Part shown: positions 4,390-37,400 of the stretch, in pieces
Position numbering within the stretch: position 1 is the stretch's first letter
Layout: each line of letters opens with the position of its first letter
DNA from: Amphiscolops sp. MND2022
Lineage: Eukaryota
Assembly (NCBI GenBank): GCA_964187785.1
Contig: OZ076415.1
Location: forward strand, 52,328,001-52,392,000
Direction: 5' to 3'
DNA length: 64,000 bases
Notes under the pieces: model-generated
Databases searched by the model: none
What the model was told of the DNA's origin: nothing
The model's input: the letters and a program-made list of their open reading frames with translations, nothing else
Translations under genes and position numbers: made by a program

Positions 4390-4483
4390 ATGGAGTTTGC
4401 ATCCGGTTGTGTTTATGATTACGGGGGATACTCTTCGGAGGAGAATGTTGACGACGGTGAAGAAGCATACACCCCAGCAACAG
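4390..4483 (+). CDS. vWA gene exon 1 ([11 protein letters not shown]...PAT)
   Basis: ATG in ACCATGG context; donor G|GTAATT, phase 1, matches the exon at 19457. Confidence 0.75.
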
Positions 4484-7400
4484 GTAATTTTTCATAGAAA
4501 TGAAAATTAAATACTTTGTTCTTAGAGCTTGCTCAAAAATCATTTTCATCTCAACCCGGGTTGACCCTCTTACTAGCATCTTGGTAGCCATGGCAAGATC
4601 TTGCCAAATTCTTACTAAGAACTTACCAAGATGAAAGAAAGGACTTTTGAAAGGACAAAGAAAGAAAAAACGTCATTATCCCAAGATCGAATCTTACTAA
4701 GATTGAAAAAATTTTAAGATTTCAAAATTTCGATCAAGAGTGCTGAAAATAGTTACATTCGTATAACAATTCTTTTGCCGGGTCTTTACGCAATTTCTCA
4801 GCCTAGACCTTGATTTCGATAAGGGGAATAATGTCTAAATGAAAGGACCTAAAAGCAATAAGACCTAAAAAAATGACATGCTTTCAAAGGGAATAAGATC
4901 TTTAAATCTTTTTCTTAAGAGGGAATAAGATCTGAAATTTTAGATCTTATTCCGTTTGAATTTTTTTCCACTATCAGATATCATGGATGTCATGGATCTT
5001 CATCAACCATGTTGGGGAGGGGGAGAGATTGAATCTTATTCTTAAAGGGAATAAGATCTAAAATCACTAATTTTTCCGTCATTTTGGAGAATTTTAGATC
5101 TTATTCGGTGTATATTCCTGTGGCTTCGACTCTCAATTCAGTGGTTTTATATCTTATTCCTGTGATTGTTAGATTAACTCAGTGATTTTTAGATATTAGA
5201 TTTTATTTTGGTGATATTTAAGTATATATTTCAGTTGTTTTTGATGTTTTCTAAGGGTTGAAAAGAGTCTTGTATTTTGTAGTTTTGAGTGAGTTTTGGA
5301 TTTTCAATAGCTTTTAAATTGAAGTTTTTCTGATGGTGCTTTTTTTCTCAATATTAAGTAGTTCGTAGCAAATTTTTCTTGCCATTGTGAGCTTCTTATC
5401 AAGATTTATTTTGGATACATGCCTGTTTTGGTAAGATCTTACCATGGCAAAATGAATACCTGTGGTAGAGCGCTATATTGTCACCTTCACTTGTGTAAAT
5501 AAAGTTGTGAGAAAATAGTTAATTAACAACAACCTGCCAAAATATGCCAAAGTGGCAAAATCACAAATATAGCCACATACACAAGATACGTCATTCAATT
5601 CAGTATTACATCCCGTTACTGTTTTCACTCCTTCAAGCTAGAGTTCTCTGAGCTACTACAATACCATGGCAAGCTCTTGACAAGATCTCAGCCAAGATTG
5701 TTCCAAGTTCTTGCCAAGATCTTACTAAGATATCTATGGAGGGTCAACCCGGGAAGCGATTCTCGTTTCGTATGTGGTGCATAAAGTCATCAATAATAGT
5801 AATTTTTGTGTCTCGGATGATAATGGCATTAGGAAATATCGACTTTTGATTGAAAACCCATGTAAATTATTAGAAGCGTGCATGCAGATCCTGATCCAAA
5901 GCATGCGGTACCATGCAATTCCGTGCATGGAACCATATGGTTCCGAGCTATATTTCCAGGTAAAGGTCAGGAAAAAGTTCTAGGAACTCTTTATCATGTG
6001 ATCATTCGGTTCATTGATACATTAAGATTTCTGTCTATATATTTTTCTATTGGTTGAAACTCAAAGGTCTTAATTCCTCCTACTGATTTTGGTAGAAGTT
6101 TCACATTTTAAAAGGAACTCAGCACAAATAAGGGTATGTATTCAACAACTGGGTCCTTTTTACATTTAATCTATTATAGCTATATAACTTTTTCTATTTC
6201 TCGAAAGCTTCAAGTTTTCTTTTGGATAACTACTGACGAAGAGAAGTTGAATAAAATATAACCATTTCCTTCTTTTTTTTGGAAATTGGAGATTCTTGAA
6301 ATGCTATAAAATAAATCATGCTTTCTAAATAGCATCCAATTAAATCAACTTTCCTGTCTCCATTTCAAAATAAATGGATTCCATGTTTTTTGGCCATAAA
6401 ACAATGATCTATTGAAACGACATGGTCTCAGTTACTTCTGGCAAGAGGCAGAAAAACCACCAGGCTACGATTGGGAACAGTGGGTCCAGCTATTTGAGGT
6501 TGCTGTGTTAGCTAGGCACTCAATCTCAATGATCGAACTTCTGCGAGTGGCCGACCAACAAAACCCAATAAATGCTGCCATGACGGGAAATCTTGACGAG
6601 ATACCTGCAAAAAGAAAACTAGTAAGTTTAATGTACATATCCATTGGGAAAACAGGAAGAAAGATGCTGATGGACAAATTCCCGAACATCAACATTCTGC
6701 TAATCGAGCTACAAAATTTGTTGCAAAACTGCACAGAATGTTTCCAGACACGTAGAAATCGGATTTTGGATAGACATATTTTTCTCTCGAGAAAACAAAA
6801 ATCCACGGAAACACTACATCAATTTTGGATTGCGCTGAACGGACTTGCTGCCCGATGTGGTTTCGGAGATCAAACAGAAGGGCTTGTTCACGACATTTTC
6901 GTCCTTAACATGAATAATAAACAAATCCAAGAAAAGTTATGCACGGAGCCATAAGAAACCCCTGCCGTGGCACTACAATTCGCCATTGCCCTCGAAGATG
7001 GTCTAAAAAGACAGAAGTCCTATGGGTACATTAGTCAGGAACCGAAAATCAAAGACGAGCCTATCTGTGCAGTAAGCAATAACAACCAAACAGAATGTTG
7101 GAGATGTGGGGCAGGGAGTTTTACATTAGATCGCTTGAATAAATGCAAAGCCCCGAATGCCATGTGTAATTACTGCGGAAGAAAGAGACGTCTTGAAAGA
7201 GTATGCAACCAAAAGAAAAAGGAGTTTAACCTGAAAGTTGGCAATAGTAGAGGAATTGGCAAAAGAGTGCAAAGAGTCGATCCAGAAGAAAGTGGCGAAG
7301 AGGACGACGAGGACTATATGGTATTAAAAGTGGAATCAGAAAGCGAGACCTCCAAACCATATTACATGGAAGGATTCATAAATGGCAATAAGTTCAAAAC

Positions 7401-10400
7401 CATGATAGACACCGGCTCCCCAGTAACCATCTTTGAACTGGATGAAATAAAACAAATAATGAAAAAAGAGAAATTACAAGTACGCCCAATGATCGGAAAC
7501 GAACAATACATGGACTTCAATGAAAAACCCCTCAAATTACTGGGATATGTGTTTTGCGAACTTCAAGTGAATGATATTTACATAAAGAAAGCCAGAATCC
7601 CCATTGCAAAAAACGGAACGAAGTCGATCATTGGTAGAGAGTGGCTATCAACTCTACGATACAAACTGGTCCCAGAAGGTGAGTTGGAAGTAAATGTAAT
7701 AGATAAAGAAAGTGAACTTAGCGCAGAAACTAAACAATTCGTGAAAGAATTTCCAAAACTTTTCGAAAGGAAAGGCAAGATAAAAAATAACCAAGTTCGG
7801 ATAAATTTCAACCCGGGGCGAAACTAACACAACAGAAAGGGAGAAGAATCCCTATTCAGCTGCAAAAGGCCGTAGATGAGGAAATCAGTAGACTGTTGAA
7901 AGAAGGCCATATCGAAAAAATTAACGAAATAAAAGATGTCTTCATTCAACCAACAGTGATAACCGTGAAAAAGGACCGTTCGGTGAAAATTGCGCTAGAT
8001 GCAAGAGCTTTTAACCAAGCAATCGAAAAGGATAAATACCAAATGCCGAATTTGGAAGATTTATTAGATATGGTGGCAGAAAAATTAGTTATAGAAAAAA
8101 GAAAAGCATGGTTTTCATCGGTTGACATGACATACGCATACGGTCAAGTTCCCTTGCATCTATTGACCGCCAAACACTGTAACTTTCAAATAATTGGAGG
8201 TGAGTCAACAGGTACATACAGATTCGTGACAGGATTTTATGGTCTGTCGGTTATGCCGACAGAATTTCAAAAAGTAATGGACATTTTATTAGCTAAATTC
8301 AGAGAAGTATTTGTATTTATAGACGATATTTTCATTGTAACTAAAGGAACCAAGGACGAACATATAGATAAACTGCGAGAAATTTTGAAATCGCTCGACC
8401 AAGCAGAAGTACAATTAAAGGCGGGAAAATGCACAATTGAAAAGAACGAAATTGAGTGGCTAGGTTTCAAACTGACAGAAACCGGAATTTGGCCAATAAA
8501 TACAAAAGTGCAGGGAATTACAGAAAAGCTAAGACCAACTAATTTGAAAGAATTGAGGTCTTTTCTGGGCGCAGTGAATCAATTCAATAAATTCATTCCA
8601 GACCTTGCAGTAATTTGCTCGCCCTTTTGTTCAATTCTAAAAAAAGATGCAACGTGGATTTGAAACGACGATCACAAAAAGGCATTTGTTAAAGTAAATA
8701 GAGAAGTAAAGAAAGTCGCCGAACTAACGCATTTCAAACGAAACAGACCGCTACGATTAATTTGCGATGCGAGCAAAAATGAGTTAGGGGCGGTCTTACA
8801 ACAGTGCGAAGAAAATAAATGGAAACCAATTTCGTATGCGTCTAGATTTTTAACGGAATTAGAGGCCAAATTTTCAATAAACGAATAAGGTATTAGCTGT
8901 AGTTTGGTCCGTAGAACATTTTAAAAATTATGTATATGGGGTTTCCTTCGGCATAGTTTCTGATCATAAAGCGTTACAAAGTGTTTTAAAGTCGAACAAA
9001 GGAGACAAAACATACTCTAGTCGACAAACGCGTTGGGTTGATAGACTTTTGCCTTTTGAATTTTCAATTGTACATACTCCTGGTAGAACGCTAGGAATGG
9101 CAGATTATCTATCAAGACACCCGTCGGAATACGAACGCGCCGTCGCAAAAGCGGAAGAATTATGATTGGTTTACTATTAAAGTAGTGGACGAAATTTCAC
9201 CAAAACTACCACGATTGGCAGATCAGCGTAAACCAATCAAAATGCGAGAAAGCGAGAAGGTGAAAAGAACGAACGCAAGCTGCGTGTTGACAGTTCATGA
9301 GCTTGTGCAAACAATTAAACTGAGAAGAGAAGTCGCTATGACGCTAATTAGTGAAACAATGGCGGAATTCAAAGGCTTATCACATTCCACAAACAACGAT
9401 TACGTAAAAGCAAACGCGGAATATGACCGTACAATTCAAAAAATAATCCAATTAGGCCAAAACAGGAATAATGCTGTTATTGCCCGCCTTCCCCCCTCCT
9501 TGGAGGGAAAGATTTAATTCCTTCGCGGTCGACTCAAACGGCCTCCTTTATATGGATAACCGTCTCGTCATACCTAAAGATATAAGAGAAAACATTTTAC
9601 GGGCAATTCATTACGGACATGCGGGAAGGGATTCTATGCTAAGAGAAGCATCAGATATTTGGTGGCCACGCATTCACAGGGAGATTGTTGAGAAGGCGCG
9701 AAATTGTCGAGAATGCCAAATAGCAGGTAAGAATTTAAAATGCCTAAAGTCACAAAACGAGTTTGGAAAGATACCAGAGGCATCTGAACCAAATGAAGAA
9801 ATTTCTTTAGACTTCGCGGGATCTTTTCAAAATGTAAATGGAAAGAAAATTTATTTACTAGTGTCCGTAGATAACAATTCAAGATGGCCTGACGCAATGT
9901 TCTCACCAAACCTTAACACTGAAAAACTAATTGAGTTTTTCATAGAATATATCTCAAAAAATGGAATACCAAAAAGAATCCGGACAGATCCCGGAACGGC
10001 ATTTAAAAGTGAGAAATTTAAACAATTTTGCAAAGAAAAATTTATAGACCATGTAACTTGCCCGGTAAGAGATCACAGAGGAAACGGGAAATTTGAAAGA
10101 ATGATACGCACAATAAATGGAAGATTGAGATCTAACAAAACATCTTAGTGTCGAAAGATAAGAGCGGAATATCAAACATCTTATATGCACTAAGATCAGA
10201 AAAGGGAATTGACGGAAAATCGGCGTTTGTAAGACAAAACGGAAGAAGCCCAAACACTTTAAAATCGCGAATCATTGAAAAATGTATTTGAGCAAGACCC
10301 AAAGATCAAGATAGAGCCCGAGAATTTCAGCGACGAGGTCGACTCCACAATTTTAGTCCGAGAGAGGAGTGTACGCCTTTGATCTAATTACTTGGTTCTA

Positions 10401-13400
10401 ATGGAATTAGATCTAACTGTTAGGTCTAACTTTCAGATCTAATTTTATCTAAAATACTTAGATCTAACCCCTTTAAGATCTAATATGTGTTCTGAAAGCT
10501 AAATATATTCTGGGAGGATCTTAATAGATCTAAGAGAGGGGGCAAAACTGAGATCTAAATAAAATGATCTAAAAAATCAGGTCTAAAAATTTCTTCTAAT
10601 TTGATCTAATTTGAGAAAAAAAGGTTTATTAGGATCTAAAACTAAAAAAGTGATATAAAGTATAAAACGTGCCTCGGATATGTCCCCATTTCCTCTAGTG
10701 CCCCGTGGCCTCTTGGGGCCGCCTTTATTCCCATCTTGCTAAACGAGGTCGAACACGAGCAAAGACCTAGCGGGAACGGAGATCGCGAAGCGATCGTAGT
10801 GGGAGCTGGTCTTTGCGACGGTGAGGGCGAGCGTGCATACAACGGATATGCCCCACATATCATACGAAACGTTTCGGCAAATTATTTTAGGCTGAGACAT
10901 TTCGGCATATTTTTTTGCCGAAACGTCCGCCGCCATGTTTTTGCCGAAACGTCTTATGCCGAAACGTCCGGAATCCGTCAAACCTTTATGTTGCTATTAC
11001 TTAAAATCAGTGCAGTTTAATCTGATTGAATACTGATGTCGAAAGAAGTACAATTGAGTGAATTTGGTATATGTACAATTGTTCCCCCTTTTCTCCTAAT
11101 AGAGAGGGAAGTGTGGTAGAGCGCTATATTGTCACCTTCACTTGTGTAAAGAAAGTTGTGAGAAAATAGTTAATTAACAACAACGTGCCAAAATATGCCA
11201 AAGTGGCAAAATCACAAGTATAGCCACATACACAAGATAAGTCATTCAATTCAGTATTACATCCCGTTACTGTTTTCACTCCTTCAAGCTAGAGTTCTCT
11301 GAGCTACTACAATACCATGGCAAGCTCTTGACAAGATCTCAGCCAAGATTGTTCCAAGTTCTTGCCAAGATCTTACTAAGATATCTATGGAGGGTCAACC
11401 CGGGAAGCGATTCTCGTTTCGTATGTGGTGCATAAAGTCATCAATAATAGTAATTTTTGTGTCTCGGATGATAATGGCATTAGGAAAAATCGACTTTTGA
11501 TTGAAAACCCCATGTAAATTATTAGAAGCGTGCGTGCAGATCCGGATCCAAAGCATGCGGTACCATGCAATTCCGTGCATGGAACCATATGGTTCCAAGC
11601 TATATTTCCAGGTAAAGGTCAGGAAAAAGTTCTAGGAACTCTTTATCATGTGATCATTCGGTTCGTTGATACATTAAGATTTCTGTCTATATATTTTTCT
11701 ATTGGTTGAAACTCAAAGGTCTTAATTCTTCCTTCTGACTTTGGTAGAAGTTTCACATTTTAAAAGGAACTCAGCACAAACAAGGGTATGTATTCAACAA
11801 CTGGGTCCTTTTTACATTTAATCTATTATAGCTATATAACTTTTTCTATTTCTCGAAAGCTTCAAGTTTTCTTTTGGATAACTACTGACGAAGAGAAGTT
11901 GAATAAAATATAACCATTTCCTTCTTTTTTTTTGGAAGAGATATTTAGAAAGAAATTGGAGATTCTTGAAATGCTATAAAATAAATCATGCTTTCTAAAT
12001 AGCATCCAATTAAATCAACTTTTCTGTCTCCATTAAAAAAATGGATTCCATGTTTTTTGGCCATAGAACAATGATCTATTGAAACGACATGATCGCTGGC
12101 GTTTGTGGGCGCATGTGTTTATCAACGATACGGTGATGGAAACTGAATAAAACATCTCAACTTGTCAAACAAGGAGGTCAGGCACAGCGTTTAGACTGAC
12201 AGCAAAATTGGCAACGTTTTCGTGCCCGTCGAGAACAAGAGCTGCCATTCGGCATATGAACTTATTTAGACAGCAGTTCACATTTTTTCAGACCTTGTTT
12301 TACGTCGAGATCGTTTAGCGAGTTTAGGAGACGGGAGGATCTTACCAAGATCTTTAGATATACGGCGCTCGCTAATCAAAAATCAGATAATCAAAATCAT
12401 ATGCATGCAGGAATTCGCAAACTACAGTACTCACTATTTCGGAAGAAGGACATCTGGGAAGCGTGAAAACTAGAGGGTGATGGTATAAAAATGGGTTTAG
12501 GTGTGAATAAGTTGATATCTCAGAAAATGGTTTTTCAACAAAGACGGTTAAATACTTTTGCAAGTGGCTATCGTAAATTAACGTTAATATGTGCAAAGAT
12601 GAAGGCGCTGGCAGCAGCTTGTTTGGATCAACTGCCGATCAGAAACCAGGGAGTCTCTTATTTGTATCCATGGCAACCCAAGGCCCTCCCAGATACTTGT
12701 TTGGATCGGCCATTAATCAGAGTGCTGCTGGTGGTTTGTTTGTATCAACAACCAATCAGAGTGCTGGCGGTGGTTTGTTTGGATCAACAACCAATCAGAG
12801 TGCTGGTGGTGGTTTGTTTGGATCAACAACCAATCAGAGTGCTGGCGGTGGTTTGTTTGGATCAAGAACCAATCAGAATCCCGGTGGTGGTTTGTTTGGA
12901 TCAACAACCAATCAGAGTGCTAGTGGTGGTGTGTTTGGATCCACAACCAATCAGAGTGCTGGTGGTGGTTTGTTTGGATCAACAACCAATCAGAGAGCTG
13001 GAGGTTGTTTGTTTGGATCAACAACCAATCAGAGTGCTGGCGGTGGTTTGTTTGGATCAACAACCAATCAGAGTGCTGGAGGTTGTTTGTTTGGATCAAC
13101 AACCAATCAGAGTGCTGGTGGTGGTTTGTTTGGATCAAGAACCAATCAGAATCCCGGTGGTGGTTTGTTTGGATCAACAACCAATCAGAGTGCTGGTGGT
13201 GATGTGTTTGGATCCACAACCAATCAGAGTGCTGGTGGTGGTTTGTTTGGATCAACAACCAATCAGAGAGCTGGAGGTTGTTTGTTTGGATCAACAACCA
13301 ATCAGAGTGCTGGCGGTGGTTTGTTTGGATCAACAACCAATCAGAGTGCTGGAGGTTGTTTGTTTGGATCAACAACCAATCAGAGTGCTGGTGGTGGTTT

Positions 13401-16400
13401 GTTTGGATCAAGAACCAATCAGAATCCCGGTGGTGGTTTGTTTGGATCAACAACCAATCAGAGTGCTAGTGGTGGTGTGTTTGGATCCACAACCAATCAG
13501 AGTGCTGGTGGTGGTTTGTTTGGATCAACAACCAATCAGAGAGCTGGAGGTTGTTTGTTTGGATCAACAACCAATCAGAGTGCTGGCGGTGGTTTGTTTG
13601 GATCAACAACCAATCAGAGTGCTGGAGGTTGTTTGTTTGGATCAACAACCAATCAGAGTGCTGGTGGTGGTTTGTTTGGATCAAGAACCAATCAGAATCC
13701 CGGTGGTGGTTTGTTTGGATCAACAACCAATCAGAGTGCTGGTGGTGGTGTGTTTGGATCCACAACCAATCAGAGTGCTGGTGGTGGTTTGTTTGGATCA
13801 ACAACCAATCAGAGTGCTGGAGGTTGTTTGTTTGGATCAACAACCAATCAGAGTGCTGGCGGTTGTTTGTTTGGATCAGCAACCAATCAGAGTGCTGGTG
13901 GTGGTTTGTTTGGATCAAGAACCAATCAGAATCCCGGTGGTGGTTTGTTTGGATCAACAACCAATCAGAGTGCTGGTGGTGGTTTGTTTGGATCAAGAAC
14001 CAATCAGAATCCCGGTGGTGGTTTGTTTGGATCAACAACCAATCAGAGTGGTGGTGGTGGTGTGTTTGGATCAACAACCAATCAGAGTGCTGGTGGTGGT
14101 TTGTTTGGATCAACAACCAATCAGAGTGCTGGCGGTGGTTTGTTTGGATCAACGAACAATCAAGGTACTGGTGGCAGTTTGTTTGAATTAACAACCAATG
14201 AAACCAATGAAAATGCTGGCGGTAGTTTCTTCGGATCAACAACCAATCAGAATCCCGGTGGTGGTTTGTTTGGATCATCAACCAATCAGAGTGCTAGTGG
14301 TGGTTTGTTTGGACCAACAACCATTCAGAGTTCCGGAGAAGGTTTGTTCGGATCAACGAACCAACAGGGTACTGGAGGTAGTTTGTTTGGACCAACAACC
14401 AATCAAGGTACTCCAAACAAACAGGCTGGTGGAGGTTTGTTTGAATCAGCGAACAATCGAAGTACTGGAGGTACTTTGTGTGAACCAACAACCAATCAGA
14501 GTGCTGGATGTGGTTTGTTTGGATCAACAACCAATCAATTTGCTGCCGGTGGTTTGTTTGGATCAACGGACCATCAGAGTGCTGGATGTGGTTTGTTTGG
14601 ATCAACAACCAGTCACTGCACTGGAGATAGTTTGTTTGGACCAACAACTAATCAAAGCACTGCTGCTGCTGGTTTGTTTGGATCGACAACCAATCAGAAA
14701 GCTGGCGCAGGTTTATTCGGATCCCTAATCAATCGAAGCACCGGTAACAGTTTGTTCCATCTAACCAATGGCAATCCTCTCTCGAACAACTGAGTGGCGT
14801 CTTTGTAGCGTTGATCACTCACTCTGCTGCTGCTGGGAATCACTAAGATCTTGGACTAAGATAAAAACTTCTGGCCCATACCTTGCCCCAGATTAAAAAA
14901 TCAATAACCACCAGAATTTTTGCATCGCTATTTTTTTCGCTAATCGTTAAACCGCTAATTTCAAAATCGCTACTTCGCTGAAAAAACTTTCAACAAACTA
15001 TTCAATGGAAAGTTGTTCCTTAAACTATGGAAAGTACCTCCCAGTAAATTCCACGATAAGCTTAATAATTGTAGAAATGGAATGAACGGAGATCGTGCAG
15101 TAGTCTCAAAAGTCATCTTGCCGGCAACAGTGCTGTGTCTGCATTTTGAATGAATCTCATCTTATGTCCAAATACTAGCATACAAATTTTGATTAGGTAG
15201 TTCATAGTGGTCAGAGATTTGACATCTCTTTTTTCGCTAATCTCTCAGCCGGTAATTTCAAAATCGCTATTGCGCTGAAAAACTTTGTCATCAAACTTAT
15301 ATGTTTGAATTCAAATAGTAAATAGTGTTGAAGTAGGAACGTTAACCAAATTCAATATTTGTTTTTTTTAAAAGATTTTTTATACTGTGGGTTTCACAGA
15401 TGAGTTAGAATTTTTCGAATTTTTTTTGAAACTCCGTGTATTTGTCGATGAACTTTTGAATTTGGACCATCAATTAGTTGCCGCTACTTTGAATCGCTGA
15501 TAGAATCGGTGAAAAATTCCTAGCGGCCTCTTATTAGCTCAATATCTGATTAGCGGTGTCAAAACTCTGCTAGCTGCAGTCATGTCCCCAAGCAAAGACT
15601 TTGAAGAAAAGTCTTCAATGGTCACTGCGAAAAGCCTTAGTTCAAAAAACATGATAGTGACAAAAACGGAAATGACAAACTGCTAGCGTTGAAAAATATA
15701 AAAATTACACAGAGAGACCCATGACGTAATACAACAAAACTGTCGCGATTTTGTATGCTTGTGTAAGAGTCTACTGAACTCTCCCTAGACACTTGTCTAT
15801 GATTTTCTTGCGTAGAACACGTTTTAGGACAATTTTTCCATACTTTCTGAGTGTTTTCCAATTCGGGGTTCCATTGTAGCCCACTAAACCCTCGGTCCAC
15901 CGTGGTGAAATTAGCCGTCCATTGTAGCCCACTGGACCCTCGGTCCACCGTGGTGAAATTAGCCGTCCTTGGGTTCGATTGTAGCCTGTTGGACCCTCGG
16001 GCTGCCATGGTAAAATTATCCCTCCCTTGCATATCTAACGTATTTGGGATAGAAGGTAGCACTGTCTCAGTTATTGCAGTTGAAATTGCATTTTGTATCT
16101 GAGAAATTAGGCTAGTTTTGATCTCATTAAGTCTTCTTCACTATTTGGTTAGAAATTTTCTCGTTATTCATTGTAGTTGTTGCAATTGTCATTTCACTGT
16201 TCTCTCTACTATTGACCTAAAGTCTTCACCTCTTACATTTGAGTTTCGTTGAGGCCTGCTTGACTCTGAGTCCAAATTTAGCTCATTTTCACTTCGATCA
16301 TTCATTTCGTCATTTCTTGAATAACTTCCTAACATTACATCATCATTTTCAGCATCTGACATGATGTCTAATTGTCTTGAACGTCTTTCTTTAGCCTTTT

Positions 16401-19400: not shown

Positions 19401-22400
19401 CTGTTTTCTACATCTGTTTCCGAACTATTTGATTTTTAATTAGTGAAACATTTTAGCGAATCAGAATCCACCTCCGCCTCCCCCTCCGCCTGCTTCCACG
19501 GGGGGTTATTGCAGAACTAGAGGAGCTGGGTTATCAGCAGCCACCGAAGTCTCATCTCACGCAGGTGTCCCTCGAGGTGTTAAAAAACTGAGTAAAGTTC
19601 GCAAGTCAGACACCAACATCATCAGTGTCAAATTCGATTGTCTTGAGGAGAAGACATTCACTACAACTGTTCAGCCAATCAAATGCGAGAAGTGTTGTGC
19701 AGTGATGACTGTACTGGAAACTACTTTGAATAATTTGGATTCTGAAAACTCCTCCGAAATGGTGAGTTCCTCCCATCCGCCTTGAGCAATATATTGGTTT
19801 CGAGGGTCATAATATACATGTTCTAGCAACGACATGGTTTTGAGTCCAAGAGTAGCCAATGCACTAAGAAAATGCATAGAAGTTTGAAGAAATTCAGACA
19901 CTTTTTGATTTATGCCATCCCATCTTTGAAGGAAACATTTGATATGAGGACACGCTGAATACCTAATTGTTTTGTTGTCGAACTGCGTGGATACCAGTAC
20001 CTAACCTACCAAAATGTCAAAATATGGAAAAAGTTGAAAATTCTTTGGTCATATTGAGGCTCTTTTCGAACAAGAAACCGCAGGTAATTTTTGCAAAATG
20101 CCAATTGGATACCCGGATCAGTCGTTGTTGAATGCTTACAACATTCTAACCGCCCGAAAAGTTTACGGGAAATTGCATCAAAACGTCAGCAATGTTTGCA
20201 TTTTAAACTATTCTGATGTTTTTATACCTAGAAAAGTGCAAACGTTTCTTTTAAAAGGTGTACTGCATAGCTAGTTATTTCGTCTAGAGCATGTTGAATG
20301 AAATTTGGCGGAAAGTGTCGAAAAAGTTTTGAATCCTTCTGTCCAAATGCTATTTGGAACGCGTATTGATAACATGTGTCTATGCTGAAATTTCTATTTC
20401 AAGAAAACATTCGAAAAGTGTCCGAAACTAGGTGTATGATGTCATAATTCTTCGAAAATGCAAATTGGAAATTTCGACCAACTTAATCCGACTTTCTCCC
20501 TTGAATAGCTTTTTGAATTGCTCGTGGTTTCAACTTTCAGATCAGTCGAAGTTCGGATCTCAAACAATTCATGAATTGATGGAAAAATGGGACCGATTTG
20601 TTAAAACTAACTTTTCCGTGAATTTTAGGGTGTTTTTGTGGCCTATACTAACAAGAAACGGAAGTTATCTCTTCTATAAAGCCGACTGGATACTAGTTCA
20701 TTCGTGTTTGAACGTCTTGACTTTTTTAACCCAAAAAAGTTTCCAAACTGTACAAAAATTACATTAAAAAAGTTCACCACTCAAAAAGTTTTCGACTGCT
20801 TAAAAATGTTTTCCGACACAAACTGCAGGTATCTTTGAAAAAAGCCTACTGGTTGAATGTTTCAGCGTCGTTTATCGTTTTCGAAATGCTAATCTACGAT
20901 TTTTCAAACTTACAAAACAGGTTTTTATCATGTCGCAGCAAATGTCACTACAAATGATAAAAACTAGAATTTGGGGATTTTTTATTTACTTTGGGGTCAT
21001 TTTGATACGCTTTTCTGAGGAACTGAAGATGTTTTTTCAAAAACGCCTTTTCCATACCGGAATCAGTCGTCGTGGAATGCTTACATTAAAGTAACCCAGG
21101 AAACAGCTGGAATGTTTTTCTAAAGGGCAAAAAATGTCAAAGTGTCAATTTTTTTAGTCAGTTTGGGGTACTTTTCTGCAGAGGAAACCGCAAACTTCTT
21201 TTAAAAAATACTGCATTTCCAAATCTTGTTTTAAACTTTTATCTTAATATTTATTATGGTTTCAACAAATAAACATTACGTTTGTCCATTTTTTTTTGAT
21301 TTTCGACAACTGTGGAGTCATTTGAGGCAGTTTCCTAACACAAATTGCAGGAACTTCAAAACGTGTTCTGGATAACAACTCCGATCTTCGTTGAAGAACT
21401 TTAGCTTGTAATCCACCAACGTTTCCATTCTTCCTAAGAAATTTCGATATTTTCACAAAATTGCCAAAAAGTCACTAAATTCCAAAAAAATGTTGAAGTG
21501 AAAGTTTTTGGGTCTTTTTGAGGCAATGTTCTACATAGAAAATTTCACAATTCTTCAAAAAGCTTGTTTCATAGCTTGGTTTCTCGTCTGGAGCTTTTAG
21601 AACTTTCTAACTTTTCATAAAAGTTCAAAATTGTAAAAAAATAGAAAGTATCGATAGTTTCGAGATTTCTGTGGTCAATTCGAGGCCTTTTTCGAACGCA
21701 AATCAGCAAAAAGTTCATTAAGAAAACCAGGTGTCCAGTATAATCGTTCTTGAAGGTTTTCAACATTTTAACTCACGAAACTTCTCAAAAATTTCAAAAT
21801 ACTACCTTTACCTAAATAGTTAAAACATTGGCATTTTTCTACTCTTTGACTCATTCGGAAGTGTTTCTCAGGCAAAACACTGCAACTTTTTCTTGTAAAA
21901 TAGCACAGCATAGCTAGTTCGTTCCTCTTTGAACATTCGAACCTTTTTACCATATTTTCCCCAAAAAGTGCACATAAATTGCATGAAAAACGACAAAATG
22001 TGAATTTTTGGATTTTGCGACTTAATTTGAGGTCTTTTTGTGTTGAGAAACTGCTTTTATTTTTTAAACAAAAATCTACTGGACACCGAGTTCATTCTTT
22101 GTTGAACAATTGTAGATTCGGATCCAAGAAATTCATCGGAAGTTTGACATGAAAATTGCATAAAGTTTTTCTCTTACTTGGTGGCGTTTCGGGGTCAAAT
22201 AAACACGTCCAAAAATCTGTACAAAAACATATCGAAATTAAATTTGTCAGTTGAAATGTAGTGTTGAACCCTTGAGTTTAAGAATACATTGGGAGCATGG
22301 AAAATTTTCAAAAAAATGCGGTTGATTTAGTGATTTTTTTCCATTTTGTGTACAATTTAAGGCATTATTTGGGGTTTTGCGGCAGGCTCATAATAGTTAA

Positions 22401-25400
22401 TGATAAAGTGTGAGGAGTTGCTGAGTAAAGTCGAATTATTTTGGATTTGAAAATTTCAACTGAACTGTTTAGGAATGAAAGGTAACTCGATTATATTTGA
22501 TCTGTTGGGTATAGTTTAATCGTGAACTTGGAATTATGCATGGTTCTTCACTTTGACTTCCCATGTATGTCACCTCGTGCTACTGATAACTTTCAGACAA
22601 AAGTTACACTGACACTCCAGAGCAATCCACTAATGTACGCCCGTAGATCGATCTCACCAATGGACCGGTGGACATATGCTTGGCTCATTTGAATTCTAGT
22701 TTATTGAAGTACTGAAGAGACTTATTTTTGCTACCAATTCTATTGATAAAGAGATCCTTAGATTTTTTTGCACTTTTTCAAAAGTTCTCCAAATCAAAAA
22801 TAATAGTTTGATTTAATCCAAGTTTGACTTTTTCAACGTGTGTGTTCCTCAATGAAAACTTTTAATAATTTTGTACATGTTCAGAAGTGGATGTGTGTGT
22901 TCTGTGGCCAAATTAACAACGTGGCAGCGGAGAGACTGAATGCGTCCCGCAATGCCGACATGCTCTTCGTGCCCGAGGGGGAGACGAGTGACCCCCAGTT
23001 GCCCCAAGAGAAGGCCGCATCCACAGGTGACACAGAAAAGGAAGGGGACAAGAAGGAAAAAGTGGACAAAACTGACGAGAGTGTTCTGCTGTTTACAATT
23101 GACATTTCCGGATCCATGGGATGCACTGTTGCCATGTCTGTACGTTCACTAAATTTTGGTTAAAAATTTGAAAAAAAACACCCGAAAAATCCTTACTTCA
23201 AAAACTCGATCATTTTTGAGCGTTGCATCTTGTAAGTAATGTGCGCGACTATTACAGTGACTAGTGTTTTTACCAGACCACATAGCTCACGCTGAAAGGT
23301 CCGCTTTTTACAGACCTTTGTCATGCCCCGCCAGTTTATTCAGCTTTTTGAGCCCTAAACCAACACAGCATTTGCACAGCAGTCAATGTTGACATGACAA
23401 CCGATTAAAATCGCCTTGGAGGATTTACATGGGAAACAAAATGTAAATGATTATTAAGAATTTTATAACTATGTAATGTGTAGAACATTAAACTCTATTT
23501 AAGACTCCGACAGTAACTGTGAATGCAGACTCTGGAAGCGACGATGACGACGCAGGCAATGCGGCGCCTGCTCCGAGACCACAGTCTGGTGGTATTTTGT
23601 CCTCCATTGGTCGAATGGTGGGGTTCCAGACTGCCAGTACTAGACCCGCAACCGCCCGGAGGTCCAGCCGACGCTCATCTAATAATAATCCTTTCCAATT
23701 CGGAGGACAACAAACGACGGCGTATATTTCACGGCTAGATGTTAGCATCTTTTTAATTTTGCATTTGATGAAAATCGGAACGCAGATTTCTTCCACGCAG
23801 ATTCGTCTATATATAGTGTTATGAATAATTGAGACGAAGTGTTCGGCGAATGCTTCAGGTGTCATGCACTGCCTTCGCTCTGAAGTCTGCCTTGTGTTTC
23901 ATGATAACTTTGAAATATTTGTTTTTGAGGATAACTTTTTCCTTTTCGTTTGGATTAATGTACTGAATTTTGTTCTACAGGCCACCAAGGGGGCACTGGT
24001 GAGTCAGATTGACGACCTGAAGACTAACAAACCCAATGTCAAGTTAGGGGTCGTCACCTTCTGTACAGAAGTGAGTTGAAATCCACTACATTATTATCAA
24101 TATAAAGAACATATGGATTGATTTTTGCTGATATTTTCTTCGCAATCAACAAGATGATTTTCTTCGCCTGATTCTCTGTTCAGAGCACTTTCTAAATAAG
24201 AAAATTCTAGGGCATCTATTCTAACATCTTTCTCTATTTAATGTTGGCTTTTAGCGACACTTTGAGAACCATCTCAGTAGGCTTTCAAGGAAAACACATT
24301 TCTGATTTTCAAATAATCCCTTAGACAACAGGTGCTCTTAAAATTTTTGGTGAATCTTAACCGATCCATTCTCATATAATAATTTCCAAGAGTAGAACTG
24401 TGCAAAATGGAAGCAAAAGTATGTTCAATAAAAACCGCTTTTTTCGGCACTATGAGATTAGCAGTGAGGACTGTGTGTTGTCAGGTGGAGTACTTGGCAG
24501 ACGGGACTAGCAGTGAGCGAAAAAAGTTGAAGCAGGAGTACGTCAACGACAAAGATGGCATCCAGAGGGAGGGCATGAAGTGCCAGATGCCTGGACCTGT
24601 GAGTGCCAGTGCAAAGATAATGAAGAGAGCCATCATGCAGTTAGTCTGTCAGTCTTTTGCTAGCCTCCCCCTCCCCCTCACTTCGATAATACACTTAGTC
24701 GAATTGAACTTCCGTAATTACTCATGTATGAATAGGAATAGTACAAAAAAGACGATACGAATTGGAGTCTCATTCCAGGCGTGAATTAGTTCAAAACAAT
24801 CAATTTCAGCAAAAAATTGTTCAATATAAAAACATTATCTCTTATTTCACTAGTTTTTGCGATTTTGTCCGATTGCAGTATGCAGTCCAGAAAAAATACT
24901 TTGACAACTAGGTAGGTCACTACTATCATACGGTTCATCCTACGGTTGTGACCATTTTTCTGCCAAGAGCTGTTCATTGCAGCAGAGAAACCATGTGAAG
25001 AACTCGTGGAAAAGCGTTGAAAACATATGCACTGCGGCGCTTCCAATTGAATATTTCCGAACCGATCTTTAAATGCTTGGAACCTCAGTTCTGTCAGTTC
25101 AGAAAACAAAGAAAACCTGAGCTTATTTTTATCTCGCGTGAAATTCTCTGATAATGTAACAGAATCATCGATATCTCGTAGAAATCGCATGCTTATGAAA
25201 TTATTCAAACTTGAGTAGTAGGTCGGTTTTGGTTCGGTGCATGCTTCTCAAGAATCATGTAAGAGAAAACCAATCTAATACTGGAGTACTGAATAATCTC
25301 AGAAACATGTCAGTAAAAACTACAAAACTTGTTTGAAAAGATGGGAAACTGCCATTTTCGAAAATCAGCTTGGAGTTTTTTTAAATCCTGGACACTTTTG

Positions 25401-31400: not shown

Positions 31401-34400
31401 GCTCAAAATTGGCCGTAAAAGAAAAAATTGTCGAAAATTTTGTCATTCTAATATCTTCAGTGATTTTTTTGAATAGAACCTCTGATTATCTGAGCGTTGA
31501 AACAATAAGGTATCCAAAGCGCAAGCGCAATTGGGGAAAAAAGGGGATGAAGTTCATCGAGTTTAGAACAACGGTGTCAAAGTTTCCCAACTTTCTTTGT
31601 TTTCGACAACATTGTCCTAATTCTGAACCCTTTCCGAAAATTTACTTCATTCGGAAATACCGTAGGCTCAGGTTTGAAACCTGAGCAACCGGTAGTGTTT
31701 CGAAAAGACATCAGACGTGTTTATTTGATAAACTTTCAAAAACTTTACTTAAAATACGTAAATTTTGACGTCATTTATCCAATATTTAATATTCAAAAAC
31801 CTCCAAGTAAAACCACTAGATATGGAGTACACCTTCCAAAAGAAGATGTTTGGAGCTACTTCGTGGGTTAGAATGGTGTAAACATTCAACAACAGCCTAA
31901 TTCGTTGTCCAGTAGGCTTATTGTTGAAGAGACATGTGTAGATGTATATTAGAAAAGTTCCTAAAAATGACACCAAAGTTGTCTAAACTATTTCCAATTT
32001 TTGACACTTCGTGAAATTATGTGCAATTATGCGCTCAACTTTCCTAAATTTGCGAAGGACCTGGTTTCAGCTTTCACCATTTTCTCAGTGCCAAATATTA
32101 ACTCAAGAAAGACCACTTTTTTCCAACAGGAATTACAAAAACTTTATTGGTTTTTTTCCGATGAAGTTCTTTGTTGGCGAAACGAGTTTCAGCTCGCAAA
32201 ACTACTTTTCTCAAGACGAAATTAGCTCTGAAAGCAAAGGGATCCCCTTTGACCTAATGAAAGTTTCGGAAAGACGCACGGATTTGAATAAAACTGGAAT
32301 GAGGTAATATCCACAATCAAAAGGAAACTTCTTTAGATCTATATGATCGAAAGTAACAAGGGAGTCACCCTCAAGACTCAGGAAACTTGTTTTCTCCACA
32401 GAAAACTTCAAAAACTAAAAATTGCGAAACTTGTAGAAACATTTCTGCAAAAAGAATTAGAATATTTTCTTTTCTCGGTAAGTCGCATAGTACCGAAAGA
32501 AAAAAAAACGAAAAGTGGCCAGTTATCGCAGAATCAAAAAATGTGTTTCCTTTAAAAATGGGCTAAGATGAATAAAAGTTTTTTTCGAACTTTGCGTTTT
32601 CATAGTGCATTGACTATTCGTGATCCTCAAATTTTGGTAGTTGTTGAACAGTTTGGGGCAGAAATTATCTCGTTTTATCATTTTTTGAGTTTTAAGTTCT
32701 GAAAATAGTTTTTGTGTCAATCCTGAGGAGCCACACCAATGTTGAATGTTGCTATAACTGTTTTAATCTCTAAATACTTGGTTCGAAAACGTTATTGTTT
32801 TAAAGAAGTTACTATCTTCCTGTATCTGAATCTCAACGAATATCAAATTGTACTAAATGGTAACAAATCTAACATGAAGAGACGGCAATTAGAATTTGTT
32901 GGTCAATAGCACCAAGTATCTCTGTCTGCTTTCCGTATTGATACGGTTGAAGGTCTGTGTATGTCAAGACCGCCCTTCCGGGTTGGTTCGCTAAAGTGTT
33001 GCTGAGAGTTTTGTATGACCTTATTTTACAGATTTTCTGATCTTCTTGCTGTACTGTGCGGTGGTTCTCTTCTTCAGTCTCCTCGTTGTTGTTGGTGCCC
33101 TTTCCTGTAATTACCGTTATTAATTAATTTCTTTTTACTGTTATTAGTATAGTATGGTACTCCGCCTACTTTTTTTGGTTTGTTTTGCAAAGGGCAGTCT
33201 ATTTGATCTTCTAATCCGAATTTTTGCGGTTCTATTTCATTTTTTCCTTTATGTATACTTTGGTCGGGATTAGTTTGTTTTCTTTTGGGAGCAGTTGTAA
33301 TTCATCGTCATTGTTGGTGTGGACTGGTTCGCATTCAGATTTGTTGTAACAGTCGATTTCCTCGTCCGATTCAATGCTCAGGTTTTGGTCCACTTCCCTT
33401 TGTGTTTTTGTTGGGTGACATGAATTGTTCTTGATTGTTTCTTGGCTGGTCTTTCCTTCCTTCTCGCCAGTCCTCGCTTCTGGCTAGTCCTCGCTTCTTT
33501 CGTGGTTTATGGGTTGGGGCGTATATACACGGAATGCTGCCACAGTTTTCCGTGTCCAGGGTTTTTGAGCAGGATGCTTGGTCTGCATTGTTTTGGCGGA
33601 TGTTTATCCGGTTTGTTGGAGCGGCGATTGTATTGTGAAATGGTAACGGGTTGGAGATCAGTTTTTTATGTACTATTTTATGTTTCTTTGTGGTTACGGA
33701 ATGTTCTGTACCCGATATCGCAGTTTGTATTTTTTTTTAATTTGCAGTCTAGCTATTCTTTATTGTAGTTCTTTTTATCGAATTTAAAGGGTTATTTGAA
33801 AATTTTCCATATTAATCGAACCGGTCGGCTTCTTGGTCTGTGAGAAGGCCATTCCCCGTCTGGGCTTCGGTTTGGCCATCTTCTTCTTTGACATGACCAG
33901 GTGGTCAGTTTTTTCACCGGCCGAATTTCTGGTGATATAGACTGAGATGTCTTTTGAGTCCACTAAAACGGATTTTTTGATGTTAGTTTAGTTCTGGGTT
34001 CTCTCCCGAAATGAATTTCAAACGGTGCTTTCTTGATTTCGGAATGTGTCGTGAATCTTAGTACGTGGAGTGCTCTGTTTACGTTCTCGCGTGAACGGTG
34101 TTATCTTATAAATTCGCCAGTATTAGATTCTTCATTGATTGGATGTTCGTTCGACCAATCCGGTACCGGTATGCAGGTTCGCAGTACCGTATTCACAGTA
34201 TGTAATTTGTGATTTGCAGAGTTCTTTCTACTCTTTTGAGATAAAGGCACCGCTTCTATTGCATTTAATTCGTTTTGGCACTTCGTAAACATTTATAAAA
34301 TCATTCAGAAAAACTATTACGGTTTCATGGTTGTATACTTGCATACTTGTATATCCACCGGCCATTTTCGTCTACTGCAATTAGTTCATATGGATTTGAC

Positions 34401-37400
34401 TGTAGTTTTTTGTTGTTCAAGGTTTCAGTGAAATCGTTTTGGATTTCTTCATCCGGCAACTTATTTTTTGGTGGTTCTGTTTTTTTTATTTAAAAGTGTC
34501 GGGAATTTTAGGTTTTTAACGGCGTTGAGGCATGCTGAGCAGGTTTTTGTTTTGTCTTCTATGTCTGCCCGCATTTTCAGCCACCAGAAAATTGCTGCGT
34601 TCTTACACATTTTGTTGATCCCGGATGTGCGAAATGTAAGACGTTGACTGCGGCGTAGCGTAGTGTCTTCGGCACAAATATTTTATCGTCCACCAGCGTT
34701 ATGCCCGAGCGGTGGGTAAGTTTTCTGGCCACTGATTCGTATTCGTTGCCGATTTAGTTGAGGTTGTTGTCTTCAATGCAGCAGTTTAGTTCTGTCAGGT
34801 CNNNNNNNNNNNNNNNNNNNNNNNNNNNNNNNNNNNNNNNNNNNNNNNNNNNNNNNNNNNNNNNNNNNNNNNNNNNNNNNNNNNNNNNNNNNNNNNNNNN
34901 NNNNNNNNNNNNNNNNNNNNNNNNNNNNNNNNNNNNNNNNNNNNNNNNNNNNNNNNNNNNNNNNNNNNNNNNNNNNNNNNNNNNNNNNNNNNNNNNNNNN
35001 NCGGTTCTATTTCATTTTTTCCTTTATGTATACTTTGGTCGGGATTAGTTTGTTTTCTTTTGGGAGCAGTTGTAATTCATCGTCATTGTTGGTGTGGACT
35101 GGTTCGCATTCAGATTTGTTGTAACAGTCGATTTCCTCGTCCGATTCAATGCTCAGGTTTTGGTCCACTTCCCTTTGTGTTTTTGTTGGGTGACATGAAT
35201 TGTTCTTGATTGTTTCTTGGCTGGTCTTTCCTTCCTTCTCGCCAGTCCTCGCTTCTGACTAGTCCTCGCTTCTTTCGTGGTTTATGGGTTGGGGCGTATA
35301 TACACGGAATGCTGCCACAGTTTTCCGTGTCCAGGGTTTTTGAGCAGGATGCTTGGTCTGCATTGTTTTGGCGGATGTTTATCCGGTTTGTTGGAGCGGC
35401 GATTGTATTGTGAAATGGTAACGGGTTGGAGATCAGTTTTTTATGTACTATTTTATGTTTCTTTGTGGTTACGGAATGTTCTGTACCCGATATCGCAGTT
35501 TGTATTTTTTTTAATTTGCAGTCTAGCTATTCTTTATTGTAGTTCTTTTTATAGAATTTAAAGGGTTATTTGAAAATTTTCCATATTAATCGAACCTGTC
35601 GGCTTCTTGGTCTGTGAGAAGGCCATTCCCCGTCTGGGCTTCGGTTCGGCCATCTTCTTCTTTGACATGACCAGGTGGTCAGTTTTTTCACCGGCCGAAT
35701 TTCTGGTGATATAGACTGAGATGTCTTTTGAGTCCACTAAAACGGATTTTTTGATGTAAGTTTAGTTCTGGGTTCTCTCCCGAAATGAATTTCAAACGGT
35801 GCTTTCTTGATTTCGGAATTTGTCGTGAATCTTAGTACGTGGAGTGCTCTGTTTACGTTCTCGCGTGAACGGTGTTATCTTATAAATTCGCCAGTATTAG
35901 ATTCTTCATTGATTGGATTGTTCGTTCGACCAATCCGGTACCGGTATGCAGGTTCGCAGTACCGTATTCACAGTATGTAATTTGTGATTTGCAGAGTTCT
36001 TTCTACTCTTTTGAGATAAAGGCACCGCTTCTATTGCATTTACTTCGTTTTGGCACTTTGTAAACATTTATAAAATCATTCAGAAAAACTATTACGGTTT
36101 CATGGTTGTATACTTGCATACTTGTATATCCACCGGCCATTTTCGTCTACTGCAATTAGTTCATATGGATTTGACTGTAGTTTTTTGTTGTTCAAGGTTT
36201 CAGTGAAATCGTTTTGGATTTCTTCATCCGGCAACTTATTTTTTGGTGGTTCTGTTTTTTTTATTTAAAAGTGTCGGGAATTTTAGGTTTTTAACGGCGT
36301 TGAGGCATGCTGAGCAGGTTTTTGTTTTGTCTTCTATGTCTGCCCGCATTTTCAGCCACCAGAAAATTGCTGCGTTCTTACACATTTTGTTGATCCCGGA
36401 TGTGCGAAATGTAAGACGTTGACTGCGGCGTAGCGTAGTGTCTTCGGCACAAATATTTTATTGTCCACCAGCGTTGTGCCCGAGCGGTGGGTAAGTTTTC
36501 TGGCCACTGATTCGTATTCGTTGCCGATTTAGTTGAGGTTGTTGTCTTCAATGCAGCAGTTTAGTTCTGTCAGGTCGGGGTCGGTGGCTTTAGTCAGCAT
36601 GAAGTTTAACTCGGCCGCCCTGACGTTGTCCTCCTGCTGTTTGTTTCTGGTAGCTTTTTAATCTACAACCCGGTTTATTCGGACGTAGTGGACGGCTCTG
36701 TCCTCGATGGGGTTGTTGCGGTAATCTTGACCTGTATAGCAAGGTATACTCCTGGTTCATGTGTTGCCACGGCTTCGTCCTGATTCGATGAGGTGGTGGA
36801 TTCAGTATCTCTTGTTGTTTCATTTCTTCCGTCCATTTGATCTGGGCCCTGTGGCACCGGTGGTATCTCGTCGTCGAAATTCCGGATGTCACCTCCACTG
36901 ATGCGTCTTCCTTTCGTTTCAGTTGCATGTCTCTTCTCTTTATCTCCTTTCTCTCATCTTCCGGCCTTCTTGGGACGGACGTAAATGTCTCTGCCGAGGC
37001 TTCTATCTCCATGTGGCTGCATTACTCTTGGTTCAATCCGTCTGTTTACTAGCTCCGCAATCGGGGGATTTTTCTCGTTTGTTGGGTTTTGACATGATTT
37101 GATCATTTGCGCCCCAAAGGTATCGCAGTTGTACGTCTGATTGGAAGAATTTCGCGTTCTGGTTATCGTTGTTATTGATTGTTGAAGAGTTCACGGTTGT
37201 ATTGTTGATAAACGGCTGTAATGTGTAGTATTTAGAATTGATATGGCTTTTTCGTGATTGGCAGCGCCGCGTATTAATTAGCGTGCGCGTATCAGGCATG
37301 TTCGTTTCACTGATGGTGTTCTCGGCTTCTGATTGGTTGAAAATTCGTCCTATACGGGCGTGTACCGATGCAAGTTGCGCGATGGCGCTGACTACAATTT

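Follow-up and report, generated by a model that had tools for sequence, protein, structure and literature searches.

A published benchmark puts Nup98 at 43 +/- 6 FG motifs in 549 +/- 87 residues (PMC8311347), and FG repeats are also found in proteins that are not nucleoporins, among them Caenorhabditis elegans GLH-1/2/4, RDE-12, and DDX-19 and human trophinin and filaggrin-2 (PMC8311347). An engineered protein, prf.GLFG52x12, consists of 52 identical GGLFGGNTQPAT units and gives an FG phase whose selectivity resembles that of the pore (Ng et al. 2021, PMC8245513); a published proline-free variant, GGLFGGATNSQT, gives irregular amyloid-like material (PMC8245513). We analyzed a natural GLFG array in a 64,000-nucleotide window of the Amphiscolops sp. 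MND2022 genome (contig OZ076415.1, positions 52,328,001 to 52,392,000). A preliminary description of this DNA had reported a 734-codon open reading frame (ORF) made up of GLFG-type repeats, located within intron 1 of a vWA host gene and on that gene's strand, and had proposed that it encodes an unanchored FG protein under selection. The ORF and its position were exactly as described. We nevertheless favor, at a probability of about 55%, a reading of the array as a coding-competent, lineage-specific intronic minisatellite that is at most a proto-gene.

The GLFG frame runs from ATG to TGA at positions 12589 to 14793 (+) and contains only 13-residue repeats, and the 39-bp tandem array that contains it, with about 56 units, spans 12541 to 14790. 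TRF gave a period of 39 with 51.3 copies and 84% matches over 12697 to 14723. Segmentation anchored on LFG gave 55 units within the ORF, 52 of them exactly 39 nt long and the other three with insertions of 9, 15, and 3 nt. The core of the array (12775 to 14139) is homogenized and carries a 7-unit (273-bp) higher-order repeat, with copies 273 bp apart being 95 to 96% alike compared to about 90% for neighboring copies. Decayed units make up the 5' edge (12541 to 12774), and the one upstream of the ATG has an in-frame TAA at 12574 to 12576. The 3' part (14140 to 14790) consists of 15 diverged units and a decayed terminal unit; it holds all three insertions but no stop in the GLFG frame. The units decay toward both array ends, and the ORF stops just past the last, decayed unit. 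The limits of the GLFG ORF are therefore those of the array, with start and stop falling in the decaying edges. Head-to-tail units of 10 to 100 bp, a homogenized center, and decayed edges are all features of a minisatellite.

The GLFG frame is not the only open one. A second plus-strand frame is open over 566 and 176 aa, and minus-strand frames are open over 271 and 177 aa. As other frames are open and a decayed unit with TAA lies 5' of the ATG, openness alone is no evidence of a gene. The 734-aa ORF has no signal peptide and no nonrepeat segment at either terminus, which also favors a minisatellite. Candidate expression signals were read from the flanking sequence. The sole TATA-like element 5' of the ORF, TATAAAAA, lies about 100 nt before the ATG at 12484 to 12491 (+), and the next AUG is out of the GLFG frame. 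Both AUGs that follow this element (12491 and 12527) belong to the other open frame of 566 aa, and the one at 12527, the first after the start site predicted from the TATA-like element, has A at -3 and G at +4, again in favor of a minisatellite. About 100 nt past the stop, ATTAAA at 14892 to 14897 (+) is a possible poly(A) signal, although hexamers of this type are frequent in AT-rich DNA.

The FG-repeat nature of the frame was confirmed by both profile and composition. Pfam PF13634 (Nucleoporin_FG) matched 15 stretches of the ORF with 305.7 bits against a cut-off of 32.2 (E = 9.5e-93), a score inflated by repetition. It was the only family found in the Pfam search, with GLEBS (PF21240), PF04096, and other domains all absent, in agreement with the earlier statement that the ORF lacks GLEBS, an autoproteolytic domain, or any other anchor. 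FG motifs number 49 across the 734 aa of the ORF, or 6.7 per 100 aa, and D/E/K/R residues make up 3.8%, compared to 32 FG motifs and 5.2% D/E/K/R in residues 1 to 480 of the genome's own Nup98. Composition and FG density thus match the FG domain of that protein, and the FG content is within the published Nup98 benchmark (PMC8311347). Proline occurs in about 1 unit in 7, and there are about 13 Cys and 12 Arg residues. PF13634 matches just 6 loci in the 1.07-Gb genome; FG-like translations are rare, so a chance look-alike is not cheap, and this counts against a minisatellite. Protein database searches with the whole ORF gave compositional matches only, the best being yeast Nup116 at 38%. The diverged 3' third found nothing close in a search of a kind that near-identical records may escape, and the ESM Atlas gave weak FG-only clusters at 0.83.

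The preliminary description had called for the true Nup98 locus to be sought elsewhere. A complete Nup98-96 gene is present on another contig, C13, where GLEBS could be read from the sequence and where PF04096 has its single locus in the genome (C13:14925770-14926210). We detected no nucleotide homology of the array to this gene. Matches of 23 to 31 nt to Nup98-96 and to a further FG locus, L002, were the only ones found; they are explained by the codons of GGLFGS common to these loci and were rejected as evidence of recent descent from either.

The host is a conserved animal gene of the vWA/Sec23-24-like type. Its exon 1 (4390 to 4483, +) ends in phase 1 at a GTAATT donor and is kept in relatives (E = 2e-8), and exon 2 (19457 to 19762, +), with acceptor ttttag|CG and donor GTGAGT, encodes a Pro-rich stretch and the first half of a Sec23/24-type zinc finger. 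The two exons join in phase 1, a structure that is kept in relatives. The second half of the zinc finger and the vWA motif DISGSMG follow in the exon 3 region (22840 to 23163, +). Directly 5' of the array, the same intron contains a long terminal repeat (LTR) retrotransposon (5461 to 12092, +) with gag, PR, RT, and INT frames split into separate ORFs and with LTRs at about 5461 to 6422 and 11112 to 12092 that are 98.2% identical. A very high-copy dispersed repeat lies directly 3' (14930 to 15570), where the summed contig depth is about 10^3 to 10^4.8 compared to about 20 to 75 in unique flanks. Carriage of the array as transposon cargo, or its membership in a multicopy family, was ruled out, as the flanks and the diverged part are single copy in the genome; the array also lies about 450 to 500 bp outside the 3' LTR. 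Rfam families were absent throughout the window. Searches of sequencing runs gave no transcript evidence: none of the runs recorded as RNA contained the stretch, and those found were DNA-type contig sets from one sample plus a 129-Mb run that contains Nup98-96 but was not among the top four for the ORF stretch. The contig sets covered the flanks at even single-copy depth and left the array unassembled, and these results favor neither a gene nor a minisatellite.

A second haplotype or individual (L017) was 97.8% identical over 17 kb. Its GLFG frame is open and exactly 13 units shorter, with 42 units compared to 55 and 565 aa compared to 734. This is the copy-number polymorphism of a minisatellite, whereas the openness of the frame in both haplotypes counts against one. 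The last 1,282 nt of the ORF differ from L017 at 4 positions, and among the three differences in the diverged 3' part, one is synonymous and two are nonsynonymous. Divergence in the unique part of the ORF is 0.2 to 0.6%, but many plain 500-bp intronic bins are as low, and low polymorphism was therefore rejected as a sign of constraint. Two more distant relatives, L019 and L024, retain both host exon 1 and host exon 2, with phase and acceptor unchanged. The ORF that was to be sought at their syntenic intron was absent: intron 1, fully covered in both and about 0.9 kb long, contained no FG array and no FG-dense frame. The array is therefore lineage specific, and the orthologues to be expected of a Nup98-type nucleoporin are missing from both introns. 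In a further relative (L018/L020/L022), a Polinton-like element fills the region 5' of exon 2, with exon 1 not found in the next 8 kb, and this species was uninformative.

The preliminary description had also held that older units keep LFG through synonymous codons and that this suggests selection on the frame. Such codons do occur (TTA for Leu and TTC for Phe), but the 6 synonymous base changes among the LFG codons of the units are outnumbered by 9 nonsynonymous ones. The overall dN/dS-like ratio was about 0.8 and not significant, which is in line with a minisatellite. Other results count against a minisatellite. Across 17 old units, divergence from the consensus was 9.8% for the nine LFG bases and 27% for the spacer (Fisher, 2e-6), and all three indels of the array are multiples of three. 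The old units have no stops in the GLFG frame, with a simulated P of 0.013 that is too optimistic because each of the three frames falls short of the simulated number of stops. The local haplotype indel-to-substitution ratio (0.166, with 73% of indels not a multiple of three) predicted 8 to 19 frameshifting indels where none was observed, but this expectation is probably too high, since most intronic indels are driven by homopolymer runs, which are missing from the array. Retention of composition in the GLFG frame gave z = 3.0 under a uniform null and z = 1.5 under a position-weighted null, the latter equal to the other plus-strand frames. The composition signal of this frame (z about 3 to 4) was thus lost once per-position variability was kept. 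The signs of selection are mixed, and frame-specific constraint does not survive these controls, so that the proposal of selection on the GLFG frame was not upheld.

How the array might have become a gene, or part of one, has to be weighed against these results. In a young nested stand-alone gene, a transcript from its own promoter would be translated, starting at the ATG at 12589, to give a GLFG polymer of 565 to 734 aa with no anchor. Through FG-FG cohesion this polymer would condense and take up nuclear transport receptors, serving either as a sink for them or as a mobile FG phase. The strong PF13634 match, the low charge and Nup98-like FG content, and the scarcity of FG-like loci in the genome are consistent with this, as are the conserved LFG codons, the in-frame indels, and the stop-free frame open in two haplotypes. 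The ORF is also flanked by the TATA-like element and ATTAAA, and an engineered anchor-free domain of 52 GLFG 12-mers does form a selective FG phase (PMC8245513). However, the array is missing from the syntenic intron of two relatives, two strong-context AUGs of another frame precede the ATG, the ORF and array limits coincide, the frame-specific signal disappears under the position-weighted null, and in the diverged 3' part nonsynonymous changes make up two of the three differences between haplotypes. Proline is present in about 1 unit in 7 and the published proline-free repeat was amyloid-like (PMC8245513), so that high expression could be harmful, a further point against a nested gene. We consider such a gene a tentative alternative, clearly less probable than a minisatellite. 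The same modest likelihood applies to a natural anchor-free GLFG protein, a near-perfect repeat of 42 to 55 units recently born from the intronic minisatellite, that, as a free FG phase or an amyloid-like solid, would sequester importins, exportins, or other FG-binding clients (retroelement capsids, for example).

An older coding origin would account for old units that are FG-like, keep LFG, and carry in-frame indels, in a locus with no present-day gene features. In that case, an FG-coding segment of an FG nucleoporin or of a lost paralogue would have been duplicated or captured, and the array would be what is left of it as it decays; the older units would have diverged while still coding, and the center would later have been reamplified as noncoding DNA. 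The other FG array in the genome, L002 (C1:62.43 Mb), does have an in-frame TAA. However, every unit, the oldest included, keeps the 13-residue period, whereas Nup98 spacing is irregular. At the nucleotide level, no GLFG unit of Nup98 matches at more than 25/39 positions, the matches to L002 are no longer than those given above, and the genome yielded no parent locus. We regard this origin as unlikely. It is more improbable still that the array serves the host as an alternative first or cassette exon, placing an FG domain of about 715 residues before the Pro-rich N terminus. A candidate donor at 14743|14744 (ACCG|GTAACA) is in phase 1, as is host exon 1, and would allow in-frame reading into exon 2, and a candidate acceptor at 12598|12599 (gcaaag|AT) is phase compatible, both being picked out by inspection. 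Yet both sites are weak and lack a polypyrimidine tract, and at -2, +5, and +6 the donor departs from the consensus. Either phase match would occur by chance one time in three, with many other AG and GT sites on offer, and the host N termini in three relatives are Pro rich rather than FG rich.

For an intronic minisatellite, we propose that unequal exchange or replication slippage amplified a 39-bp unit that is free of stop codons in several frames; the present copy number is 55 in this haplotype and 42 in the other. Intron 1 would have expanded in this lineage from less than 1 kb to 15 kb through transposon insertions, and the array is most probably spliced out with it at the conserved exon 1-exon 2 junction. 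The long GLFG frame would exist because the unit length is a multiple of three and the unit is stop free, and it probably yields no protein at present. It is coding competent nonetheless and, if translated, would give a cohesive Nup98-type FG polymer.

If translated, the product would be the first natural FG-only protein without a pore anchor, and would show that a cohesive FG domain can originate de novo in a 39-bp repeat. Its copy-number alleles, with 42 and 55 units, would then form a natural series relating repeat number to phase behavior or transport-receptor capture. The suggested roles as a condensate, importin sink, or Gag decoy describe what such a protein could do if made. If the array is untranslated, it is a caution that a stop-free, multiple-of-three minisatellite can mimic a low-complexity domain at a Pfam E value of 1e-92 and that gene calls on such frames need RNA evidence or conservation.

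The GLFG domain of Nup98, Nup100, and Nup116 (PF13634) and the ORF share GLFG motifs, uncharged S/T/N/Q/G/A spacers, and low charge. In contrast to these nucleoporins, the ORF lacks GLEBS, the autoproteolytic domain, and the Nup96 part, and it differs from Nup98 in its strict 13-residue period, near-identical units, and lack of conservation in relatives. Like prf.GLFG52x12, it is anchor free and near perfect, with about 50 GLFG units of 12 to 13 residues, but it is natural DNA with a putative product, and with proline in so few units it is closer to the proline-free GGLFGGATNSQT. Nonnucleoporin FG proteins use their repeats outside the pore, in several cases within condensates (PMC8311347), but they carry folded domains such as helicases and mostly FGG or GFG repeats, whereas the ORF is repeat only. 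Codfish antifreeze glycoprotein genes have a documented function, as well as documented expression and secretion signals (PMC5850335, PMC8622921), whereas a product of the array is putative. What these genes and the array have in common is a short, multiple-of-three unit amplified to a long open frame in formerly noncoding DNA, with a variable copy number (PMC5850335, PMC8622921).

The 734-codon frame reported in the preliminary description was recovered exactly by ORF listing (12589-14793, plus strand), and we read it, with a probability of roughly 0.55, as a young, polymorphic, coding-competent intronic minisatellite that is at most a proto-gene. Tandem Repeats Finder delimited an array with a period of 39 (51.3 copies, 84% matches) at 12697-14723. 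When the translation was cut at every L/V/F-F/C-G/E/V/H motif, the ORF fell into 55 units, 52 of which are exactly 13 residues (39 nt) long, the other three being longer by 3, 5, and 1 residues. The array is homogenised in its central part (about 12775-14139), with a higher-order repeat of seven units (273 bp): copies at 273-bp spacing are 95 to 96% alike, compared to about 90% for adjacent copies. Unit divergence rises gradually toward both ends. The periodic similarity extends 5' of the ATG, up to about 12541, where the array unit reads Y-F-C and an in-frame TAA is present at 12574-12576; the final unit reads straight into the stop codon. The ORF is therefore the array and nothing else, bounded by the first stops met in the decaying edges. 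A second plus-strand frame stays open in two stretches, of 566 aa at 12491-14191 and 176 aa at 14198-14728, and minus-strand frames of 271 aa and 177 aa are also open (ORF listing). The flanks and the diverged part are single copy in the genome.

As described previously, the ORF is located within intron 1 of its host. This intron is 15 kb long and lies between exon 1 (4390-4483, plus strand, ending in phase 1 with donor GTAATT) and exon 2 (19457-19762, plus strand, acceptor ttttag, donor GTGAGT). The label "vWA gene" is fair, since one later exon has a DISGSMG motif. The later exons also give weak, correctly ordered matches to the zinc finger, trunk, and beta-sandwich domains of Sec23/24. In the window (4390-28063) and in three relatives (L019, L024, and L018), the gene has a proline-rich N-terminus followed by a zinc finger of the Sec23/24 type, a vWA domain bearing a DxSxS motif, and a beta-sandwich like that of Sec23. 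Among 1.8 billion representative proteins, no annotated full-length homologue of exon 3 was present; its matches were exon-sized ORFs from five assemblies only. Intron 1 also contains an LTR retrotransposon (5461-12092) with LTRs of about 960 bp each (98.2% identical), a TGG primer-binding site, a polypurine tract preceding the 3' LTR, and broken gag/PR/RT/INT frames spread over at least four ORFs. The element lacks a clear target-site duplication (ATACC versus TGATC). An origin of the array as part of the retrotransposon was rejected, as the array starts about 450 to 500 bp past the 3' LTR. Just 3' of the array, still in intron 1, is a very high-copy dispersed repeat (14930-15570). The summed contig depth of this interval and of 11197-11393, an LTR segment including an 11-bp palindromic tandem repeat (CAAGATCTTGC) at 11321-11382, was 10^4 to 10^5, versus about 20 to 75 for unique DNA. 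Elsewhere in the window, a 7-kb block (33000-40000) with strong T-over-A skew (AT skew of -0.3 to -0.46) encloses a 200-N gap (34802-35001) flanked by near-identical ORF segments (33207-33431 and about 35000-35206) and is probably a duplicated or tandem element interrupted by the gap.

The frame is intact in a second haplotype or individual (L017), where it is open for 565 aa, exactly 13 units fewer. Over 17 kb, L017 and the window are 97.8% identical, so that they diverge about as much as the two haplotypes do in the reads. The two differ at four sites in the final 1282 nt of the ORF; three of these sites are in the diverged 3' part, one synonymous and two nonsynonymous. This low divergence was rejected as a special feature of the ORF, since plain intronic 500-bp bins at 0 to 0.6% are numerous. 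Searching representatives with the third host exon returned exon-sized ORFs on long contigs of other assemblies. The host exons of L019 are 54 to 69% identical to those of the window at the protein level; exon 1 is at 8109-8199, exon 2, starting at 9077, keeps the phase and the ttttag/CG acceptor, and the intron between them, of about 877 bp, has no FG-dense frame. For L024 (exon 1, 7057-7137; conserved part of exon 2, 8108-8278), the FG array is absent throughout the 20 kb examined. The ORF is thus missing from the syntenic intron of both relatives, where the preliminary description had proposed looking for it, and with the exons conserved, the array is a lineage-specific gain within a conserved intron. 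A third relative (L018/L020/L022) is uninformative because exon 1 was not found and a Polinton-like element lies upstream of exon 2. This Polinton/Maverick-like element (L018 1-7400, L020, and L022 8300-18700; ENA ERZ26859043 ctg76554) has more than 20 ORFs, a double-jelly-roll capsid, and a family B DNA polymerase split by an intein that carries a homing-endonuclease region. A second copy is on a separate contig (L021).

The most serious competitor, a young stand-alone FG protein, is possible but clearly less probable. The earlier characterization of the ORF as FG-like and anchor free was upheld: PF13634 (Nucleoporin_FG) was the sole Pfam family matched (E = 9.5e-93), and the search found no GLEBS domain, autoproteolytic domain, or any other family. 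The composition is 25% G, 13.5% S, 13.5% T, 9% N, and 7% Q, with 3.8% charged residues, and a hydrophobic N-terminus is absent on inspection. The 49 FG motifs, including 31 GLFG, give a density of 6.7 per 100 aa, equal to that of the FG domain of Nup98 in the same genome, and fall inside the published Nup98 benchmark of 43 +/- 6 FG in 549 +/- 87 aa (PMC8311347). Inspection also revealed a TATA-like element (TATAAAAA, 12484-12491, plus strand) and an ATTAAA about 100 nt 3' of the ORF stop (plus strand). A start site about 30 nt past the TATA-like element would make 12527 the first AUG; this codon (A at -3, G at +4) belongs to the other open frame rather than to the GLFG frame. A search for RNA runs of this organism yielded none; the four runs containing the stretch are DNA contig sets from a single sample, and a fifth run, of unspecified kind, contains Nup98-96 but did not rank among the top matches to the ORF stretch. 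The evidence on the proposed selection on the GLFG frame points both ways. In the 17 old units of 39 nt, the nine bases coding for LFG were off consensus at 9.8% versus 27% for the spacer (Fisher, 2e-6), and LFG was retained in 11 of these units versus 4.9 expected. Each of the three indels in the array has a length divisible by three. In the flanking intron, the haplotypes differ by 45 gap events per 271 mismatches, with 73% of the gaps not multiples of three, a ratio that predicts 8 to 19 frameshifting indels in the old units versus 0 observed, although this expectation is probably too high because the array is without the homopolymer runs that cause most intronic indels. No stops occur in the GLFG frame over the old units (simulated P of 0.013), but the simulation overstates this deficit, as all three frames have fewer stops than simulated. 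On the other side, unique variants are even over codon positions (20/20/24), the dN/dS-like ratio is 0.8 and not significant, and the LFG codons have 6 synonymous and 9 nonsynonymous changes. Retention of the consensus residue set by old units in the GLFG frame gave a z of 3.0 under a uniform-position null and 1.5, equal to the other plus-strand frames, with per-position variability kept. A DNA-level minisatellite core would also take the form of a conserved 9-mer. Overall, the evidence for selection is suggestive, not conclusive.

PF13634 matched just six loci in the whole genome, on C1 (L002), C13, C12, C8, and C2 and at the GLFG ORF, so FG-like translations are rare in this genome. The true Nup98, which the preliminary description had proposed locating elsewhere, is complete on C13, and the GLFG ORF is not one of its exons: in the 1.07 Gb searched (window, C7:52328001-52392000), PF04096 was found at one locus, within an uninterrupted 1797-aa ORF that combines GLFG repeats and a GLEBS-like segment with the autoproteolytic domain and the Nup96 part. 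No nucleotide homology was found between the array and this gene, the best match being 23/27 nt across GGLFG-coding bases, and no Nup98 GLFG unit exceeded 25/39 identities with the array unit. The best paralogue is L002, with common sequence limited to short GGLFGS-coding matches and one in-frame TAA in L002. A relic of a captured FG-coding segment is unlikely, and use of the array as an alternative host exon is more improbable still. A candidate donor (14743/14744) and acceptor (12598/12599) seen on inspection would fit the phase of host exons 1 and 2; both are weak, and the relatives' host N-termini are proline rich, not FG rich.

These loci have features of their own. The Nup98-Nup96 gene lies at C13:14923148-14928541 (L016 2149-7542, minus strand). 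This gene normally has many introns, and its uninterrupted 1797-codon ORF suggests either that a retrogene has replaced it or that the lineage is poor in introns. In L002 (C1:62429122-62433246), FG repeats recur about every 25 aa (GGLFGSAAAQPASK / SLFGSSSAQPAS) between nonrepeat flanks, and a second frame is open as well; the locus may be either a genuine FG nucleoporin exon or one more FG array in decay. A 15-kb run at C1:8820854-8835271 has very long open frames, reaching about 1100 aa, whose compositional similarity to the GLFG ORF is weak (21 to 24%); the run is probably a giant repeat gene or array rich in G/S/T.

An anchor-free domain engineered from 52 identical GGLFGGNTQPAT units makes an FG phase that keeps out inert proteins and enriches transport receptors more than a thousandfold, and a proline-free version (GGLFGGATNSQT) gave irregular, thioflavin-positive, amyloid-like material (PMC8245513). 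In the natural array, just about 1/7 of the units have a proline; by extrapolation from these published repeats, a product, if made, would thus be predicted to cohere strongly and might tend to form solids.
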